Both the position numbers and the translations under genes were made by a program. From Cyanophora paradoxa CCMP329 (taxonomy: Eukaryota; Plantae; Glaucophyta): a stretch of 19,840 nucleotides of DNA. A model generated the notes under the pieces. It made no database searches, had not been told where the DNA came from, and saw only the letters and a program-made list of their open reading frames with translations. This document shows positions 2,499 through 13,700 of the stretch, piece after piece. Each line of letters opens with the position of its first letter. The stretch's first letter is position 1. The stretch covers positions 1 through 19,840 of the forward strand of contig QPMI01000389.1 of NCBI GenBank assembly GCA_004431415.1, read 5' to 3'.

Positions 2499-3256
2499 AG
2501 CCGCCCCCGCAGATTACTCCAGAGCGCTCGAGCTGAACGGCAACAACGTGAAGACGTACAACAACCGGGGCTACAGCTACGCCAAGAAGGGGTCCGCAGC
2601 GCGGGGCGGCCGGCGGAGCGCGGGGCGGCTGGCGTGACGGGGCGCAGGGACTACGAGCGGGCGATCGAGGACTACAACCGGGTGCTGGCGCTGGACCCGC
2701 AGAACGTGCACGCCTACCACAACCGCGGCATCTCCTACGAGAAGAAGGGGTCCGCCCGCCCCGCCCCCCCGCCGCGCCGCGGGGCGCTGAGGCGCCGGGC
2801 AGGGAGTACGCGGCGGCGATTGCGGACTTCTCGACGGTGATCCGGCTGGACCCGCAGAACGCGAACGCCTACTTCAACCGCGGCTCCGCCTACGACTCCG
2901 TCGGGGACTTCGACCGCGCCATCGCCGACTACTCCCGCGCCCTCGACCTCGACATCGCCTCCCGCCAGCGCCACGCCTCCGCCGACGCCCCCGGCCCCCG
3001 CCCCGCCCCGCCCCGCCCGCGGCCCCTCCCCCGCCCCGCGCGGCCCCTCCCCGCCCCGGCCCCGCCCGGCGCCCCCTCCGCTCTGCGACCAGTCTCCGCC
3101 GGCCAGGCGGCGCCAGCTCGCGGGGCTACGCCGCAGTCGGCTGCCCCCGCCCCCGCCACCTTCGCTCCGCAGCAGTACGGCAGCGAGCCCCCGCAGCGGC
3201 CGCCCTCCCGCTCTCGCTCCCCTATGCCCGCAGCGCCCTCCTCCCTCCGCCGATAG
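108..3256 (+). CDS. Multi-exon tetratricopeptide-repeat (TPR) protein
   Basis: Splicing introns 202-267, 531-582, 706-758, 965-1011, 1556-1613, 1941-1989, 2250-2302, 2431-2512, 2592-2647 and 2750-2802 gives one frame from ATG 108 to TAG 3254-3256. It contains many TPR units (e.g. NAYAYYNRGISHDRRGDYAAAIEDFTAAIELEP, NANAYFNRGSAYDSVGDFDRAIADYSRALDLD), an Ala-rich linker and a Pro-rich tail. The first exon and any intron in the tail are less certain. Confidence 0.9.
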
Positions 3257-3477
3257 CAGACCCTCTCCTTGCTCCCCATCCATCCCCCGCTGATTCTGTG
3301 TCCGCGTCCTGAGTTGCTTGCATTTTCCCATGGCCAAGGCACACCCGCGTTTGAGCGCGTACACGCGTACGCAGAGCGCCGCTTATGCGCGTGCATGTTA
3401 CAGATCTATAGCTAGACCCTCGGGCGCAAGCCGCCTCGAGCTCGCGCGCAAAAAAGCGGACGCCAGGCGCCATGGCC

Positions 3478-3482
3478 AAAAA
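3478..3482 (-). terminator. Pol III oligo(T) terminator after tRNA-like copy 1
   Basis: T5 on the minus strand, 8 nt after the discriminator base; a T5 sits at nearly the same spacing in copy 2. Confidence 0.6.
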
Positions 3483-3490
3483 GCATGTGA

Positions 3491-3565
3491 TAGCCCCGCG
3501 AGGACTCGAACCTCGCACCTCCGGCGGGTCGTGGAACCGGCGCTCTACCCATGAGCTACAGGGCT
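3491..3565 (-). tRNA. tRNA-like RNA with enlarged, non-canonical anticodon loop (isotype undetermined)
   Basis: AGCCCTG-TA-GCTC ATGGGTA GAGC-G-CCGGT TCCACGACCC GCCGG-AGGTG-CGAGG TTCGAGT CCTCG-CGGGGCT-A. Acceptor, D and T arms and the A and B boxes are intact; the anticodon loop is 10 nt. Confidence 0.75.
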
Positions 3566-3857
3566 TTCTGTCGGCGGAAGGCGTTCAGACGAATTCGAAG
3601 CTGGATCAGAGCGCAATTTGATCCGGCAAGTGACCGGGTTTGCCCCCCACCCCCCCGGGGACGAACGCCGCCGGGGTGCGCGATTCAAAACTCGCCCAAA
3701 CTACACCGGACCACCAGGGCTTGGAATTGCTGCTTGCTCGTCGCTTAGAGAGCATCTGCATACGACTTGCGGCGTCCGTGCTCAAGGGCGTCAAGGGCGG
3801 CAATTGTCCTGAGCGATTTGCCGCGGGAGTCCGTCTGCGCGAAAAGAGGCTGGAAAG

Positions 3858-6800
3858 ATGAATGTCCCGCGTGACGAGACGTTCTTGTGCGAGCGCCCTG
3901 TGCGCTAGGCGAGCGTTCGCTCTCACACTCACAAAACCCCCACGGGCAGTTTCCGCACAGTGTGTCGTGTGCTTGAGGGGATCGACAAGTCATCCAAGAG
4001 CGCAAATAAGAAGAAAGAGATGACGAGTCTCTTCGACAGCTATGGGGACCGCAAGAACATCTATCCGCTCATTCGCCTCATCCTTCCGCAGGCGCGGAGT
4101 CGCCTCTGCGCTCCGCGCGCTTCTCCTTGTGAATGCCAGCGCGCAGTTCGACTCGCAGCGCGGGGCGATGAACGTGAAGGAGGCGAAGCTGAAGGCCATG
4201 GTCATCCGCGTGTACGGCTTCAAGAAGTCGGACCGGCAGTACAAGATGATCGACGACCACAAGGCCGTCACCGTCGGCACGAAGCGGCGATACGTGCGCG
4301 CCGCTGCCCCGCCGCGCCGCGCCGAGGGCGGCGTGGGAGCGCGAGGCGAGCGCGGGGGCCGGGGCGCAGAAGAAGAACGTGGGGGATCTCGTGGAGGCGA
4401 TCTACGAGGCGATCAAGGACCGGGCGCCGAGCCAGTCCTCCGTGAGCGTCCGCGACGTCAACCAGTTCCTCGACGACCTCGCCACCAAGACCGACCAGCG
4501 CGCCCGGCCCCCGCCCCCGCCCCGCCCCGCGCCGCCCTGAGGCCCCGCGCCGGCAGGGACGAGCGCTTCCCCCTGATGAAGGCCTTCTGCATGCGGGCGA
4601 CGGCCGTCGAGCAGAAATGGCTCTTCAAGATCATCCTCAAGGGTGCCCCGCCCGCCCCCGTCCCCGCCCGCCGCGCGGGGCCCGGGGGCGAGGCCGGGGC
4701 GGGGGCGCACAGACCTGAAGATGGGGATGGGGGAGGACGCGGTGCTGCGGGCGTACCACGAGGATGCGCCGAAGCGGTTCAAGCTGCGGAGCGACCTGAA
4801 GCTGCTGTGCGAGGAGCTCTGGGACCGCAACGAGCGCTTCACGGGCCAGGACATAGAGCCGATGGTCCCCGTCGCCCCCATGCTCTCCGGCCGCACCATC
4901 GACTTCAAGGCCGTGCGCCCCGCCCCGCCGGGGCCGGCCCCGCGCGCGCCGAGCGAGGGGCGGGGGCGGGGGCAGGTGAAGGCGTGGCTGGGGCGGCGGG
5001 AGGGCGGGGTGGTGGTGGAGAGCAAGTACGACGGGGACCGCATCATGATCCACAAGCAGGACGACCGCGTCGAGCTCTACTCCCGGCCCGCCCTCGCCCC
5101 GCCCCGCGCCCCGGGGCGGCGCGGGGCGTGCAGCTGACGGGGCGCATGCGCAGGAACTGCCACGAGGCGAACTTCGAGACGGAGGGCTTCAAGCGGCGGC
5201 TGGCGGAGGCGGGCCTCGTCAAGGCCCGCTCCTGCGTCATCGACGGCGAGATGATGGTCTGGGACAACGTCAACGGCGTCTGGGTGCCCGCCCCCCGCGC
5301 CCCCGCCCCGCCCCGAGCACGCCCGCTCACGCGCCGTGCCGCAGGCCCCCTTCGCCTCCATCCGCGGCAAGGGCGCGCCCGCCTCTCCCGCCCCCCGCCT
5401 CCCCCCGGCGCCTGACGCACGCGGCAGAGAACTTCGACGGCCGGGGCACCCACGAGATGGTCTGTATCCTTTGCGCCGCCGCCGCTGTCGCGCGCCGCCT
5501 GCGCCGCGCCTCTCGGCTGCGGCCTCGACGGGGCGGCGGGCAGACATCGCGTTCGACCTGCTCTACGTGGACGGGGAGTCGCTGCTGGGGCGGCCCCTCC
5601 GCGAGCGCCGCGAGCGCCTCTGGCAGGTCCTCGAGGCCCGCCCCCGCCTCGTCGAGGCGCCGGACGTCGCCTGGGGCGGCCCGGGGCGCCCCAGCGTGGA
5701 CGACGTCGTCGACGCCTTCGACCGCACCGTGCGCGACGGCTTCGAGGGCCTCATCCTCAAGGACGCGGAGAGCGCGTACGAGCCGGCGGACCGGCGCGCC
5801 TGGGCCAAGATCAAGCCCGACTACATGGACGAGACGGCGACAGACCTCGACCTCGTCGTGCTGGGGGCCTACCTGGGGACGGGCGCCCGCTACCGCGGGG
5901 GCGACATCGCCGGCTTCCTCCTGGGGGTGTGCCGCCCCGCGAGCAACCCGCAGGAGCGACCCCGCCAGTTCCTTTCCTTCGCCAAGGTCGGCAGCGGCTT
6001 CAACGCCGCCGAGCTCACCGAGCTCCGCAACCTCCTCAAGCCCCACCTCAAGCCCGCCCCGCCCCCCCCGGCCCCTGCTCCGCCGGCGCCCCCTCGAGCC
6101 CCGCGCAGGCAGTACGACCACCGGAGCCCGCCGCCGGAGTGGTGGGCGGGGCGGGACTGGGCGCCCCGTGCGGACGACCGGCCGCGCTACTGGGTGGACC
6201 CGCGCGAGGCGAATGTGGTGATCGAGGTGCGCGCCTACGAGGTCATCGCCTGCCCGAGCGACCTCTACCGCGCCGAGGCGTACGCCCCCGCGCTCCGCCC
6301 CCCGCGCTCCTTCGCCGGCCCCGCGCCCACGGCGGGCAGCACGCTGCGCTTCCCCCGCTTCCAGCGGGTGCGGCGGGACAAGAGCTGGTGGGAGGCCATG
6401 GACCTCCGCAGTGCGCCCGCCCCGCCGCGCCGCGCCCCGCCGCGCCGCGCCTCGCGCGGGGCCGAGGGGGCGGGGCGGGGCAGTGCTGAAGCGGACGATG
6501 GAGGAGCGGCGGGCGGGGTCTTCCCCGGGACGGCGCGGGAGGCGCTGGATCGGGAGGAGGGCGGCGAGAGCGGAGGCGACGAGGCCGCCGCCGAGGAGGC
6601 CGCCGGCGACGCCGGCACGCAGGGGACCCAGGGCACGCAGGGCGGGGGCGGCGGCGCTGGGCGGGCCGCGGCGGCGAGGCCTCCCGCAAGAAGCGCAAGA
6701 AGGAGGCGGCGCCCCGCGGCCCCACCTCCGTGGTGCGCCCCGCCCGCCTCGCCCCGCCCCGCTCCGCGCCGCGCGGGACGAGCGGGGGCGCAGTCGGAGG

Positions 6801-8066: not shown

Positions 8067-8894
8067 CCCCCGACTCGAGCTCCCTCTCCGCGCCGAGTCT
8101 CCTCATGTACATGTCGCGGTCACCGGGTGACGCGCGAGTTGTACAGTTCAAGCTTGTACAGTACTCGAGGCCTATAGCTTAAATGTATAGTAGTATAGCA
8201 GCCTGCGCGGCCGCGGGCGGTCGCTGATCATGATCATCACTGATCCGGTCCGGAGTGCCCCCCACAGGCTCCCACCTGGCAAGTTACATGAGTTCCGACT
8301 CGGCGAAAAAGTTCCAAACTTCGGAATTCGAAAATGCCATATGGTGCCGCCCCGCCGGGCCCGGCCCCGGCGCCAAATTCCATGCCAGTAATCATTGAAT
8401 CATACTATGATATGCATGAGGCTCCGAGAGGCTCGAGCTCGCCGAGTCGAGCCTCGGAGGTTCCGGATTCACGGAGTTTCGACCATGGCCAACTTCAAGC
8501 TTAAGTGACTTGGCAGTTGCAATTGCAATTGCAAGCACAAATCATGCACTGCGGCAAAACTTTTGAATCGATTGGCCACGGTCTGGTCCGACTGGTCCGG
8601 CACTGCGGCAATCGCAACTCTCCGAGTGGCCAGGTGACCGGGGTCGCGGCTTATAGCTATAGCCTCGTAGCTCAGTGGCTATAAGCCTTGAAGGTCACAG
8701 TCCTCCTCAAGCCTTTCCCGGCCCGTGGCACCTAAAACTCAGCGCCCTCACCCTCTGCGTTGAGGGATCGGAACGGCAAGGAATGATGATGAGCCGCTGA
8801 GAGGCGCATCCGCATTCCCTTCCCCAACAAGCTGTCAGCTTGGGAGGGGAATCCAGATTGGGGGCCCACGCCTCGGTCTAGCTGAAGATCACGA

Positions 8895-9946
8895 TCAGAG
8901 GCGGGCGTGGCGGTCCGCGACGGCCCACGTCTCCACGAAGGCGTACCCCCCGGCGGCCCCGTCATCCTCCCCGCCGAATGCATCCTCCAGCGCCCCGTCG
9001 TCATCCTGCAGCGGCCCGATATCAGAAGGGCGGTTGGGGGCGGGTGGAAGGGCAGAGGATGATTTTTTTTGGTGTGTGTGTGTGTGTGTGTGGGGGGGGG
9101 GGGGGAAAGGGGGAAGGGCGGGGCGGGGGACGGGCGGGGGGGATGGGCGCGGAGGCGACCTCGAGGGGAAGTCGGAGCTCGCTAACGCCGTGAAGTTCGG
9201 GCCCCGGAAGAGGCGAGGGGGCAGGCTGACGAGGGCGCTCACTGCGCGATGCACGCAAACGTCAGAGCTCGGCCGCTGGCGTAACAGTGGACGAGGCTGT
9301 CAAAAATCTGCTCGAATACCATGTAACACACATCTGCTCGAATACCATGTAACAGCTCATCCGCGCCACCTTTAGCTTAGGACAGGAGCTGCAGATCTGA
9401 CCCGTGTCGCAGCGGAGGCGCCGCCGGCCCGGCGGTCCGGGCGCCGGCCTAGGCCTGAGGATTCGGAAGGGCGGCCGAGGCGGAGGAGCGGCGGGAGCTG
9501 AGCGAGGAGGCCGCGGAGGAGGAGACGGTGCGGGCGGTGCCCGTGGCGGTGGCGCTCGAGGCCGACGAGGCGGTCGAGCGCGCCGTGCTCGGCTCGCTCA
9601 CCGACGCCGCCCGCGGCCGCACCGCCCGCTCCCGCTGCTCCCGCTGCTCCTCCTTGATCTGGAAGACCATCGCCTGCACCCCGCGGCCACCCGTCGGCCC
9701 GGCGGCGGCGGCGGCGGAGGGGCCGGGGGCGGGAGGCGCGCACGCGGTGGTGCACGCAGGGCGTGCCCACACGTTAGTGTGCTTGAAAGTTAGAGTTTTC
9801 AAGCGCACCGATCTGGATTGCTGCCCGCGGAACAAGCAGTGAGCGTCGGGCGGCGGCCCGGATCAGTGCGCGGTGCGACGAAGCGAAGCCGCACCTGGAC
9901 CCTGGGCGCTCGCAGGTCGCGGTGCTGCCGTCTTTGTCGTATCCAT
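8895..9946 (-). CDS. Hypothetical spliced gene or pseudogene, structure unresolved
   Basis: Exon-like blocks bounded by the local intron style: ATG 9946 (MDTTKTAAP), AMVFQIKEEQREQRER..Ser-rich, and a last-exon-like DDDGALEDAFGGEDDGAAGGYAFVETW after a CTGAT..CTGCAG acceptor near 9006. No single clean frame and no recognisable family; it may extend to 8732. Confidence 0.3.
9072..9105. repeat. (GT)10 microsatellite followed by a G run
   Basis: Directly visible; probably intronic in the minus-strand hypothetical gene. Confidence 0.9.
9306..9354. repeat. Tandem duplication of ATCTGCTCGAATACCATGTAACA (23 nt, period 26)
   Basis: Exact copies at 9306-9328 and 9332-9354 separated by CAC. Confidence 0.95.
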
Positions 9947-10112
9947 CAGTAGCAGCGGCGAGCCCCCGGACGCCCCCGGATGGCGATCTTAATCGCGCAC
10001 CCCGGCGGGTCTCCGGGGAGGGGGGGGGGGGGGGGCAAACAGGATCACTTGTCCGATCAAATCGATATCGCGCTCTAGTCGATGTTCGTCTGAACGCCTT
10101 CCGCCGACAGAA

Positions 10113-10184
10113 AGCCCCATAGCTCATGGGTAGAGCGCCGGACGCACACACCGGAGGTGCGAGGTTCAAGTCCTCGTGGGGCTA
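10113..10184 (+). tRNA. tRNA-like RNA; nominal CAC anticodon but no U33 and a 31-39 A/A mismatch
   Basis: AGCCCCA-TA-GCTC ATGGGTA GAGC-G-CCGGA CGCACAC ACCGG-AGGTG-CGAGG TTCAAGT CCTCG-TGGGGCT-A; 72-nt cloverleaf with A and B boxes. Confidence 0.75.
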
Positions 10185-10193
10185 GCCGTCCAC

Positions 10194-10198
10194 TTTTT
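10194..10198 (+). terminator. Pol III oligo(T) terminator after tRNA-like copy 2
   Basis: TTTTT 9 nt after the discriminator base. Confidence 0.6.
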
Positions 10199-10767
10199 GC
10201 CGGGTGTCGGCGCGCGGCTCGCGGGGTTTGGCGCGGCGTGCGAGGCCGGCCGGCGGCTCGCGCTATAGCTAGCGCTCGAGCTCGACGGTCTAGATCCAGA
10301 TCTGTGCACGAACACGCGCATGCGCGGCGCTCTTCGTAAACGCGCTCGAACGCGGGCCCCGGGTGTGCCGGTGCCCTCGGCCGCGGGCACGCTCGCAACG
10401 CGCGCCGCGGGCGCACGCGGACGCGTACGGGACCTCCCAATGAAATGAAGAGGGATGAACTGCAGCCAGAGCGCTGCAGTTGCATGGTCGGTCCAAAAGA
10501 AGTCAATTGCAACCCCACCGGCGGTGTCCTTCCCGGGTTTTCCCGAGTGGGAACGCGCCCTCCCTTCCTTTTCCCTTCTAGTATCTATACTCTCTTTCTT
10601 CCCACTTTGACCTTCAAAAGTGGATAAAAATGTATGGTCGGCCGCGCGCGCAACCTTTTGGAAGACGGAGCGCACCCCCGGGCCGGCAGCTAGAGAACTG
10701 CAGCTGCTACCCGCTGCCATATTTTGACAGCCAGCGAGCGCCAGCGCTGCACTTTAGAGGCGGGGCG

Positions 10768-13700
10768 CTAGCCGGCGGCGGGGGCGAGGGCGGGGGCGGG
10801 GGCATCGGCGCGGGCCTCGGCGGCGGCGCGGCGAAGCCAGAGGGGGAGGGCGGGGCCGAGGGCGGCGGCGGCGGCGGCGCAGAGCTCCTCGAGGGGCTCG
10901 AGGACGACCCCGGGGGCGCCCCGGGCGAAGAGCTCGCGGGCGGCGGCGAAGAAGAGGGTCCCCTCGCACGCCGCCCGCGCCGCCGCGTCGGGGAGCTCCC
11001 CCGCGGCGGCGAGCTCGCGCCAGGCCGCCTCGTCGGCGCGCACCGCCTCGAGCCAGAGGGGCGCCAGGTCCTCCCCGGCCCCTCCTCCTCGAGGCGCGCC
11101 CCGCACGAGGCGAAGAGCCCGAGGGCCGCCGAGAGGAGCCGGCGGGGGCCCTCGGGGTCCGCCCCCGCGAGGCGCGCGCAGGCGGCGACGACCCGCGGGG
11201 CGTGGGGAGGGCGTGGATGGGCTCCGCGCGGGCGGCGGCGGCGACCTCGTTGGCGAGGGCGACGGCGCGCACGAGGGCCTCGTCCCCGCGCAGGGCGGCG
11301 AGGGCGGGGGCCCCGCGGGGCCCGCCCCAGGGCGGCGAGCTTGGCGAGGGCGAGCAGCGCCGAGCAGCGGGCGGGGTCGCGGCCCGGGGCGGGGCGGCCG
11401 TGGCGGCGAGGGCGGGGGCGGCCTCGTCGAGGCGGCCGGCCTGGAGGAGGAGGAGGGCGCGGAGGCCGGGGCGCGCGGCGGCGAGGCGCTCGACCTCGCC
11501 GGCGAGCTCGGGCTCGCGCGCCGCCTCCAGCAGCCGGCCCGTGCGGCCCGTGTCGGCGTAGAAGGCGAGGAGCGGGCCCGCGAAGTCGGGGCCCCGCCGG
11601 GCGAGGAGCTCCCGCAGGTGCGCGTCGGCCTGCTCGCGGGAGAGGAGCGGGGCGCCCTCCGAGCCGTCGCTCCCCGCCACGAGCAGCTCCGCGAGGGCCC
11701 GCAGGTCCCCCGTGCGCTCCGCCAGCGCCATCGCCCGCGCCGCGTCGCGGCAGGTGCGCCAGAGGGCGCGGACGAGGGCGGCGCGGGGCTGGGCGACGGG
11801 GGCGCCCTGGAGGGCGAGGGCGTCGAGGAGGACGGCGCCGAGCTCGGCGACGTGCCTCGCGAGCCCCTCGCGGTGCGCCCCGGGGCCCCACCGCCTCCAG
11901 CGCCCGCCCCACCAGCTGCTCCACCGCCCCGTCGCCCTGCGCCCCGCCCCCGCCCTCGCACCCCCGCCCCGCACCCACGCCCCCTGGCACGCGCACCACG
12001 CCGCCCCGCCCACGGCGGCAGGTACTCCGGCGAGGCGCCCGGCGGGTGCCTGGCCGGATGTCAGACGCGGGAAGGGCGGAGCGGGGCGGGGCGGGGCGGG
12101 CGCGGGGCGCACGAGAGCTCGTGGAGGATGGCGGAGGGGCGCAGGAGCGCCAGCGCGAAGCTGCCGCACCGTCGGCGCGGTGGCGGGCGGGGCGGGGCGG
12201 GGCGGGGCGGGGCACCTGTTGGCGGCGAAGGAGGCGGAGGGGGCGAGCTCGGGGCGGGCGTAGGGGTCGCGCTGGAGGCGGGGGAGGAGGGCGGCGAGGG
12301 CGGCCTCGAGGCGCGGGGCCTCGCTGTAGTAGACGTCGAAGGGGGAGACGGAGGCGGCCCAGTGCTCGAGGCGCCCCTGGACCGCCTCCTCGATCGCCTC
12401 CTCCACGAGCCGCAGCGGCGCCTCCGACTGCGAGCGCCCCGCCGCCGCCGCCGCCGCCAGCGTGTTCTGCACCGCCCGCCCCGCCACCGCCGCCCGCAGC
12501 CGCTGCCCCGTCTCCACCAGCCCCCTCCGCGTCTCCTCCGCTGCAGGGCGCTCAGCGGCGGGGCGGGGTCGGGGGCGGGGCGGGTGCGGACCGAGGGGCA
12601 GGGGCCGGAGGGCCTCAGCGAGGGCGTCGTGGCGTGCGAGGCGCTCGCGCAGGGCGCGCTCGAGCATGGGGCTCCCGCGGGGCGCGGGGCCGGCCCCCGC
12701 CCAGGCCTCGTCGGCGGCGGGCCGCTGGTGGGCGAGTGCGGCGTCGAGTGCGGCGGCGGAGCGGGCGAAGGCGGCGGGGTCGGCGTCGAGCTGGCGGCGG
12801 GCGAGGGCGCGGGCCGCCTCGACGCGCCCCTCCACCGCGAGCCGCAGCGCGTGCCCCAGCGCCCCTCCGCCTCCCCGCCCCCCGAACGAGGAGGCCGAGG
12901 GGAGGCCGGGGCGGGGGCGCGGGGGAGGGGGAGGGGGCGGCGGAGGGCGCGCGGGGCTCCTCGTAGAGGGAGGCGGCGCGCAGGAGGCCGCGGCGGGAGT
13001 GGAGGAGGGCGGGGCCGGCGCCCCCGGGGAGGGGCCCCGCCGCGAGGAAGGCGCCGGGCGCGCGGGGAGGAGCTCGCCGTCGGGGAGGACGCAGCACGAG
13101 GGGAGCAGCACGAAGGGCCGCGCCTCGGTCCCCGCCCGCCCCGCCACCAGCTGCAGCCGCGCCCCGGGCAGCTCCTCCGCCGGCAGCGCCCCCGCGGGGA
13201 GGTCGCGGCACCAGAGGGCGGCCCCCGGGGGCGGGAGGGAGCCGACGGCGGCGGGGTCGAGGGCGTGGAGGGAGAGGAGGGCTGGCCCGGGGGCCTCCAG
13301 CGCGTGCACGGCGAGCACGTGCAGCGCGCCCCCGACGAGCGCCGCGTCCGCCACCTGCACCGACGCCCACCGCCCCGCGTACTCCCCCGGCACCTCCGCC
13401 CGCAGCCGCGCTGCCAGGGGCGACTCCCCCGCGAACTGCGGCCGCCGCGAGCTCGGCGGGGGCGGGGAGGGAGGCGGGGGCGGGGACGCACGCGGGCGGG
13501 GCGTCGAGGCCGACGGTGTAGCGCTCGACGGTGGCCGCCTCGTCGCCCTTGAAGCAGAGCGCCTGCCCCCGCCCCGCCCGTCCGGCCCGCCGCGAGCGCC
13601 GCGACGGGCGAGGCCTGCGCGGGGCCGCGGCGGCCGCGGCGGAGGCTGCCGAGGAGGGCGCTGACGATGCCGGCGTGGCGGGCGAGGCGGGTCTGCTGGA

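Follow-up and report, generated by a model that had tools for sequence, protein, structure and literature searches.

A 'tRNA-like' class already exists in PlantRNA for loci of the kind described here (bioRxiv 10.1101/2021.12.21.473619); in PlantRNA 2.0 it takes in tRNA pseudogenes or highly divergent tRNAs of unknown function. The loci of Cyanophora paradoxa considered below share with that class a match to the tRNA model, a full cloverleaf, A and B boxes, features that bar normal decoding, low copy number and a nuclear location. They differ from it in that the tRNA body is far better kept than the flanks across four loci, with the loop alone varying, and in that two of the members carry conserved patches on both sides. 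The kind -- tRNA-like genes -- is already known, while the particular family is apparently new.

Other described systems resemble these loci in part. Like tRNA-derived SINEs, they have a tRNA-derived Pol III promoter in dispersed copies; unlike them, the tRNA part is internal, beginning 131 nt inside the unit, its fold is kept, a T5 run comes directly after it, a tail is missing, target-site duplications do not rise above chance and the copies number only four, and a SINE was rejected as a candidate on these grounds. Cassandra-type miniature LTR retrotransposons carry a Pol III 5S cassette inside each LTR, and here too a Pol III promoter and terminator cassette sits in a discrete repeat of ~400 nt, ~130 nt from a 5' edge marked by TG; the cassette is nevertheless of tRNA type and not 5S, there are four copies only, and no paired direct repeat, PBS, PPT or target-site duplication accompanies it. 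The mascRNA and MEN-beta elements at the 3' ends of MALAT1 and NEAT1 likewise combine the shape of a tRNA and a non-functional anticodon arm with conserved sequence upstream of the RNase P site. Unlike them, the present loci have their own A and B boxes and T5 run, no long upstream RNA was seen, and the Rfam mascRNA model (RF01684) scores 22.1 and 26.4 bits where its threshold is 42.5. An analogy of this type, drawn when the sequence was read by itself, is not supported. Finally, in trypanosomatid snRNA and 7SL loci and in the plant tRNA-snoRNA dicistrons a tRNA-type promoter lies beside other conserved non-coding sequence, as it does here; in contrast to those tRNA-linked small RNA genes, neither flank holds a known small RNA, the orientation is the same instead of divergent, and a terminator stands between the tRNA-like part and the 3' block.

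The window -- the whole stretch of 19,840 nucleotides that was analysed -- contains two copies of the element, here called units A and B, each ~370-400 nt long, lying 6.3 kb apart in inverted orientation (Table 1). Pairwise alignment and BLASTN agree with the original reading of the sequence alone (below, the sequence-only reading), which had described two diverged, inverted intergenic copies with the same modular order. The best BLASTN match pairs 9982-10356 with 3696-3344 at 70% identity over 390 columns (E=2e-49), and local alignment extends the right end of the homology to about 10381/3326; the limits first proposed, 9991-10387 and 3327-3685, were close to these measured ends. Homology had also been seen to continue ~120 nt upstream and ~200 nt downstream of the tRNA-like part, and it does: compared with dinucleotide shuffles, z is 17 for the 5' module by itself and 14.6 for the 3' block by itself. 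The 130-180 nt outside the units are unrelated in A and B (z=0.7 and z=-0.1) while both of these outer parts of the unit are significant by themselves, and the unit therefore has sharp ends.

Table 1. Positions of the units, their parts, the putative RNA contigs and the adjacent genes in the 19,840-nt window.
Feature	Position	Strand	Equivalent in unit B	Basis or remark
Unit A	9982-10381	+		Full homology with unit B; BLASTN, local alignment and shuffles
Unit B	3326-3696	-		Full homology with unit A; BLASTN, local alignment and shuffles
Conserved 5' module	9982-10062	+	3696-3616	
Hairpin, invariant stem and variable loop	10000-10018	+		
G16 run	10020-10035	+		
Hairpin, invariant 7-nt loop	10042-10054	+		Two stem pairs changed on both sides
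GATCAAAT motif, Inr-like TCAAAT	10055-10062	+		Conserved in A and B
28-nt block abutting the tRNA-like 5' end	10085-10112	+	3566-3593 (-)	100% identical
tRNA-like gene A, 72 nt, read as Val(CAC)	10113-10184	+		ARAGORN; Rfam RF00005; motif scan; minimum-energy fold
tRNA-like gene B, 75 nt	3491-3565	-		ARAGORN; Rfam RF00005; minimum-energy fold
A box	10120-10130	+	at 3558	Consensus match in window only at the two copies
B box	10163-10173	+	at 3512	Consensus match in window only at the two copies
T5 run, Pol III terminator type	10194-10198	+		9 nt past discriminator of A
T5 and T6 runs of copy B	3478-3482 (T5), 3450-3455 (T6)	-		
Conserved 3' block	10263-10381	+	3440-3326	Patches of 7-10 identical bases
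Single contig, putative RNA run X4	10061-10590			
Single contig, putative RNA run X6	10062-10642			Depth 103; Illumina adapter at right end
g9581, DNA ligase	ATG near 3858	+		
g9584	stop near 10768	-		

The long-read assembly of C. paradoxa describes a genome of about 100 Mb with 67.6% GC (PMC6704402). Exons of the window are 100% identical to the gene models tig00001718_g9581.t1 and tig00001718_g9584.t1, whose identifiers have the form used for that assembly, and the pattern of GC by codon position agrees with the strands given for the ligase (+) and g9584 (-). The gap from the 3' end of a TPR gene to the start of the ligase is largely taken up by unit B, whose 5' module faces the ligase promoter; two convergent genes flank unit A, each with its 3' end towards it.

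At gathering level Rfam reports only two matches in the window, both to RF00005 and both running over model positions 1-71 of 71, with 51.4 bits for A and 49.3 for B against a gathering score of 29. ARAGORN likewise reports two tRNA-type genes, one at each of the same places, and the cloverleaf that it draws for both copies is also their minimum-energy fold, with stems of 7, 4, 5 and 5 bp, consensus T and D loops and the discriminator base. The core is thus an Rfam tRNA match, called tRNA-Val(CAC) by ARAGORN in copy A, and the suggestion of an undescribed ncRNA family is not supported, a match of this kind being one that the sequence-only reading had itself named as refuting it. The layout is that of a type 2 Pol III gene, with A and B boxes at tRNA spacing and at least four T just downstream; the T5 run that had been noted after the tRNA-like part is present in both copies, starting 8-9 nt downstream of discriminator A73. 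The four A/B substitutions outside the anticodon arm all preserve the structure: two of them turn pair 7-66 from A-U in A to G-C in B, another makes pair 6-67 C-G in A and U-G in B, and T-loop position 57, an A in copy A and a G in copy B, stays a purine. The anticodon arm itself is aberrant in both. Copy A has the loop CGCACAC, with G33, and an A31/A39 mismatch in the stem; copy B has three extra bases, giving a 10-nt loop or, in another register, one of 8 nt, and ARAGORN calls it ambiguously as Trp/Val, a reading that needs an 8-nt loop, four anticodon bases and a mismatched stem. The loop of a decoding elongator tRNA, with seven bases, U33 and purine 37, is found in neither. The sequence-only reading was right that the cloverleaf is kept while the anticodon loop is free to change, and its view that this part does not serve for decoding also gains weight: U33 is near-universal among elongator tRNAs, and because no copy has it, decoding is unlikely.

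Conservation between A and B is very uneven along the unit. The core, that is, the 28-nt block together with the tRNA body, is identical at 86 of 90 positions, compared with 161 of 289 in the rest of the unit (Fisher p=2e-14); given 70% identity, a perfect run of at least 33 would have p of about 0.001, and the near-identical tract measures 57 nt. From left to right, identity is 66-86% in the 5' module and 24% in the spacer at 10064-10084, is complete in the 28 nt next to the tRNA-like 5' end (as had been observed at the outset), and is then 93% in the 5' half of the tRNA, 38% plus a 3-nt indel in the anticodon loop, 94% in the 3' half of the tRNA, 36% in the trailer at 10185-10262 and 60-64% in the 3' block, where 10263-10340 gives 64%. 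The 28-nt block has no other occurrence in the window. Since the 3' block lies beyond the T run it is not within a Pol III transcript; in B it contains a TGTAA at 3402 (-), on the sense strand. A coding role for the 3' block was considered and rejected, as outside the tRNA part the reading frames of the two copies do not agree. The patchy conservation of the flanks probably marks promoter or transcript-end signals rather than pieces of a single composite RNA. For two conserved parts, the 5' module lying 50-130 nt upstream and the 3' block past the terminator, a simple Pol III gene offers no explanation, and the conservation of the tRNA body and 28-nt block could be due to gene conversion between the copies, instead of selection.

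The size of the family was determined from contigs of two independent DNA runs (X1 and X15) aligned to 9700-10650 at a likeness of at least 80%. Exactly four contigs cover the variable loop at 10143-10150 in X1, and the same four do so in X15; their depths in X1, 79, 79, 104 and 104, sum to the total of 366, with single-copy depth at about 79-93. This is a four-member family and not a high-copy repeat, and the term "multi-copy" in the sequence-only reading survives only in a weak sense: there is more than one copy, but exactly four contigs are found, each at about single-copy depth. Two of the four variants are copies A and B. The loops differ by substitutions and indels, the body at very few places. 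The third variant, read from fragments, has B's loop insertion and B's trailer; upstream, its TCACTTG motif runs straight into the six bases next to the tRNA, so that the 28-nt block is largely missing. In the fourth, also read from fragments, the loop has 7 nt and carries U32 and A33, and the 3' flank bears no relation to A's. Across the four variants position 33 is G, A or C and U33 occurs in none, CAC, purine 37 and A73 are present in all, and the loop has 7 nt in two members and three extra bases in the other two. At the same likeness of at least 80%, 10308-10467 and 10052-10083 are single-copy. A and B are read as a younger duplicate pair of a roughly 390-bp segment within this family, which is why they have flanks in common, ~130 nt upstream and 200 nt downstream.

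No further member of the family came from metagenome contigs scanned for exact matches to the D-arm half, nor from viral contigs scanned in the same way with that half, the T-arm half and the 28-nt block. These scans did lead to phage or bacterial tRNA arrays (L001 at 961-982, L002 at 1577-1598 and L003 at 2329-2352, the last with 25 tRNAs), in which a tRNA-His or tRNA-Ile has an exact 22-24-nt half in common with the tRNA-like gene, with unrelated flanks. These matches, each confined to one half of the tRNA, are taken as chance overlaps of the tRNA consensus, and the arrays were rejected as relatives. An antisense ORF spans the element; its translation, used as bait for spurious gene calls on other copies, found none; exact look-up of ten short ORFs around the element gave no match, and no contig matched the ligase ORF.

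The 5' module had been described as structured and as part of the precursor, and neither point is supported. The single-sequence folds of the 5' module with the tRNA-like part do not outdo those of shuffled sequence (z=+0.46 and z=-0.83). In the RNAalifold structure the G run is paired to some of the 28-nt block, by pairs that never vary. The two double-sided pair changes in the second hairpin have an estimated chance of roughly 0.05-0.1, and the pattern of this hairpin hints at a structured nucleic acid, something for which the model of a Pol III tRNA-like gene has no need. The words sampled from 9991-10387 are present at a share of 0.77-0.79 in all 11 putative RNA runs, from at least seven studies, runs whose assignment to RNA is a guess (none is on record as RNA) and whose contigs show neither strand nor small RNAs; this share fits the presence, in the putative RNA runs, of the part from about 10062 onward. 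The contigs of two of these runs, X4 and X6, begin at 10061/10062, within the conserved GATCAAAT motif and past both hairpins and the G run, all of which lie outside the part that they cover, and X6 shows no coverage at 9700-10050. Nothing here thus points to a precursor with the ~120-nt 5' module in it, and no support was found for the 5' module as part of an RNA. A drop in coverage next to the G16 run could be another cause of the contig start at 10061/10062, and the DNA run X15 also is without 10052-10083. The right end of the X6 contig lies 11 nt past a TGTAT. The segment 10062-10642 fits a plus-strand RNA that would start inside unit A and run through the tRNA-like part, a reading based on the Inr-like start, the absence of poly-T at the contig start and the end 11 nt past a rare TGTAT; the 3' UTR of g9584, a gene of the minus strand, is an equally good reading of it. 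Small RNAs that the tRNA-like part might serve, as had also been proposed, did not come to light: with Rfam at E up to 10, the flanks in 9700-10700 and 3000-4000 gave nothing credible besides the tRNA.

The RF00005 and ARAGORN cloverleafs, the A and B boxes, the T runs, the conservation of the core and the four variants are the grounds for reading these loci as a four-member family of Pol III-type tRNA-like genes derived from tRNA-Val(CAC), most likely non-decoding, with A and B as its younger duplicate pair. This is the preferred explanation, and it is given about an even chance of being correct. On this model, TFIIIC would bind the A and B boxes and position TFIIIB over the conserved 28-nt block, the likely site of TFIIIB, of the Pol III start and of the leader; Pol III would start a few bases upstream and stop at the T run; and RNase P and RNase Z would trim the transcript to a tRNA-shaped RNA of about 72-75 nt, most likely incapable of decoding. 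If the family is under selection, it would be a clean, small case of tRNA genes kept for their fold or promoter and not for decoding, in a deep-branching glaucophyte alga whose non-coding RNAs have been little studied, and with only four loci, few enough for knock-out or probing. In a further reading, to which a small chance is given, the product would be a selected, non-decoding tRNA-Val-shaped RNA that in A and B lies ~50 nt inside a longer transcript starting at TCAAAT, where it would act as an RNase P/Z processing signal or else as a charged RNA unused in translation.

The sharp ends of the homology on both sides, together with the unrelated contexts and opposite orientations of A and B, also suit the relic of a mobile element, such as a solo LTR or other non-autonomous element, that carried a tRNA-derived Pol III cassette and whose flanks are conserved because master copies needed them. 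Both units have TG at the left edge, and B has a CA end; a start (the Inr-like TCAAAT, where the putative RNA contig begins) and an end signal (B's TGTAA) within one unit make an LTR-like layout, and solo, old copies could have lost other marks of an LTR. A relic is nevertheless judged unlikely, though with an appreciable chance: only four variants are found at a likeness of at least 80%, each at single-copy depth, A is without the CA end, no PBS or PPT lies nearby, and no direct-repeat partner was found in the window. The scan for target-site duplications gave 5-7-nt matches in the number expected by chance and at non-equivalent alignment positions in A and B, and decay is non-uniform, both of which are in line with the sequence-only reading. 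Somewhat less probable is a view in which the copies are neutral duplicates of a dead tRNA-Val gene, their body and 28-nt block homogenised by gene conversion and not kept by function. The loops are aberrant and different in all four variants, the placing of A and B 6.3 kb apart and inverted favours conversion, and the near-identical tract is, at 57 nt, short. Conversion would however have had to spare a 10-nt loop in the middle of the tract and yet homogenise both tRNA halves, and to act also on two more copies elsewhere with unrelated flanks, and every change in the stems keeps the pairing. Should the loci prove to be decayed tRNA-Val copies or a transposon relic, they would matter mainly for annotation, being best filed as tRNA-like and not as tRNA-Val(CAC), and their conserved flanks would not amount to a new RNA class.

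A further rival is the idea of a composite ncRNA, in which a ~120-nt structured 5' module and the tRNA-like part would form one precursor split by RNase P and RNase Z, in the manner of MALAT1 and mascRNA. The 5' module is indeed conserved on its own (z=17), it has one short hairpin with two compensatory pairs and an invariant loop, the 28 nt ahead of the cleavage site are identical, and the mascRNA model matches weakly; but those matches, of 22-26 bits, stay below the threshold of 42.5, the module folds no better than shuffles, and all 11 putative RNA runs hold only the part from about 10062 onward. Type 2 Pol III promoters, moreover, start close to the tRNA and not 130 nt upstream, one member of the family is without most of the 28-nt block and another is without the common 3' flank, and a composite RNA is accordingly considered very improbable. 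The least probable of these readings is that A and the other copy whose loop has 7 nt are working tRNA-Val(CAC) genes in spite of the odd loop. All variants do keep CAC, purine 37 and A73, four copies would be a normal gene number for such a tRNA, and a decoder of GUG is needed, GTG making up 15 of the 36 Val codons in the confirmed exons; yet U33, near-universal in elongator tRNAs, is in no copy, position 33 is G, A or C depending on the copy, A has a mismatch at 31-39, and two copies have three extra loop bases.

Several other features of the window were noted in passing. A search by eye for a terminal inverted repeat of the units gave just an imperfect 7-9-nt match in GC-rich sequence, and this candidate was dropped. 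Just downstream of unit A, both DNA runs cover the ~145 nt at 10485-10629 at roughly 15-25x the depth of single-copy sequence; there are indel variants and, at 10564/10629, an opposite-strand joint, and the X6 contig ends just past the stretch. It probably represents a separate repeat, short interspersed or palindromic. The window has no AATAAA. TGTA[AT] occurs only nine times in the 19.8 kb, including 8184, 9322, 9348, 10631 and 16437 on the plus strand and 3402, 8288 and 17003 on the minus strand, several of them at or a little past the 3' end of a gene, with one each for the ligase and the succinyl-CoA ligase. UGUAA is the poly(A) signal in green algae, and by analogy TGTA[AT] may have this function in C. 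paradoxa. A perfect 10-bp inverted repeat at 8648-8687, in the AT-richer intergenic sequence of 8100-9000, encloses a 20-nt loop with an A-box-like TAGCTCAGTGG; neither ARAGORN nor Rfam calls a tRNA there. A motif of ~26 nt ending in ACCATGTAACA stands twice in tandem at 9300-9360, just upstream of a coding exon that starts near 9400, and T8, a (TG) repeat and a G14 run come one after another in the intergenic 9060-9106. The region of the TPR gene includes a C run of about 30 at 2470-2500, and repeats of the GCCCCGCCCC type recur in apparent introns.
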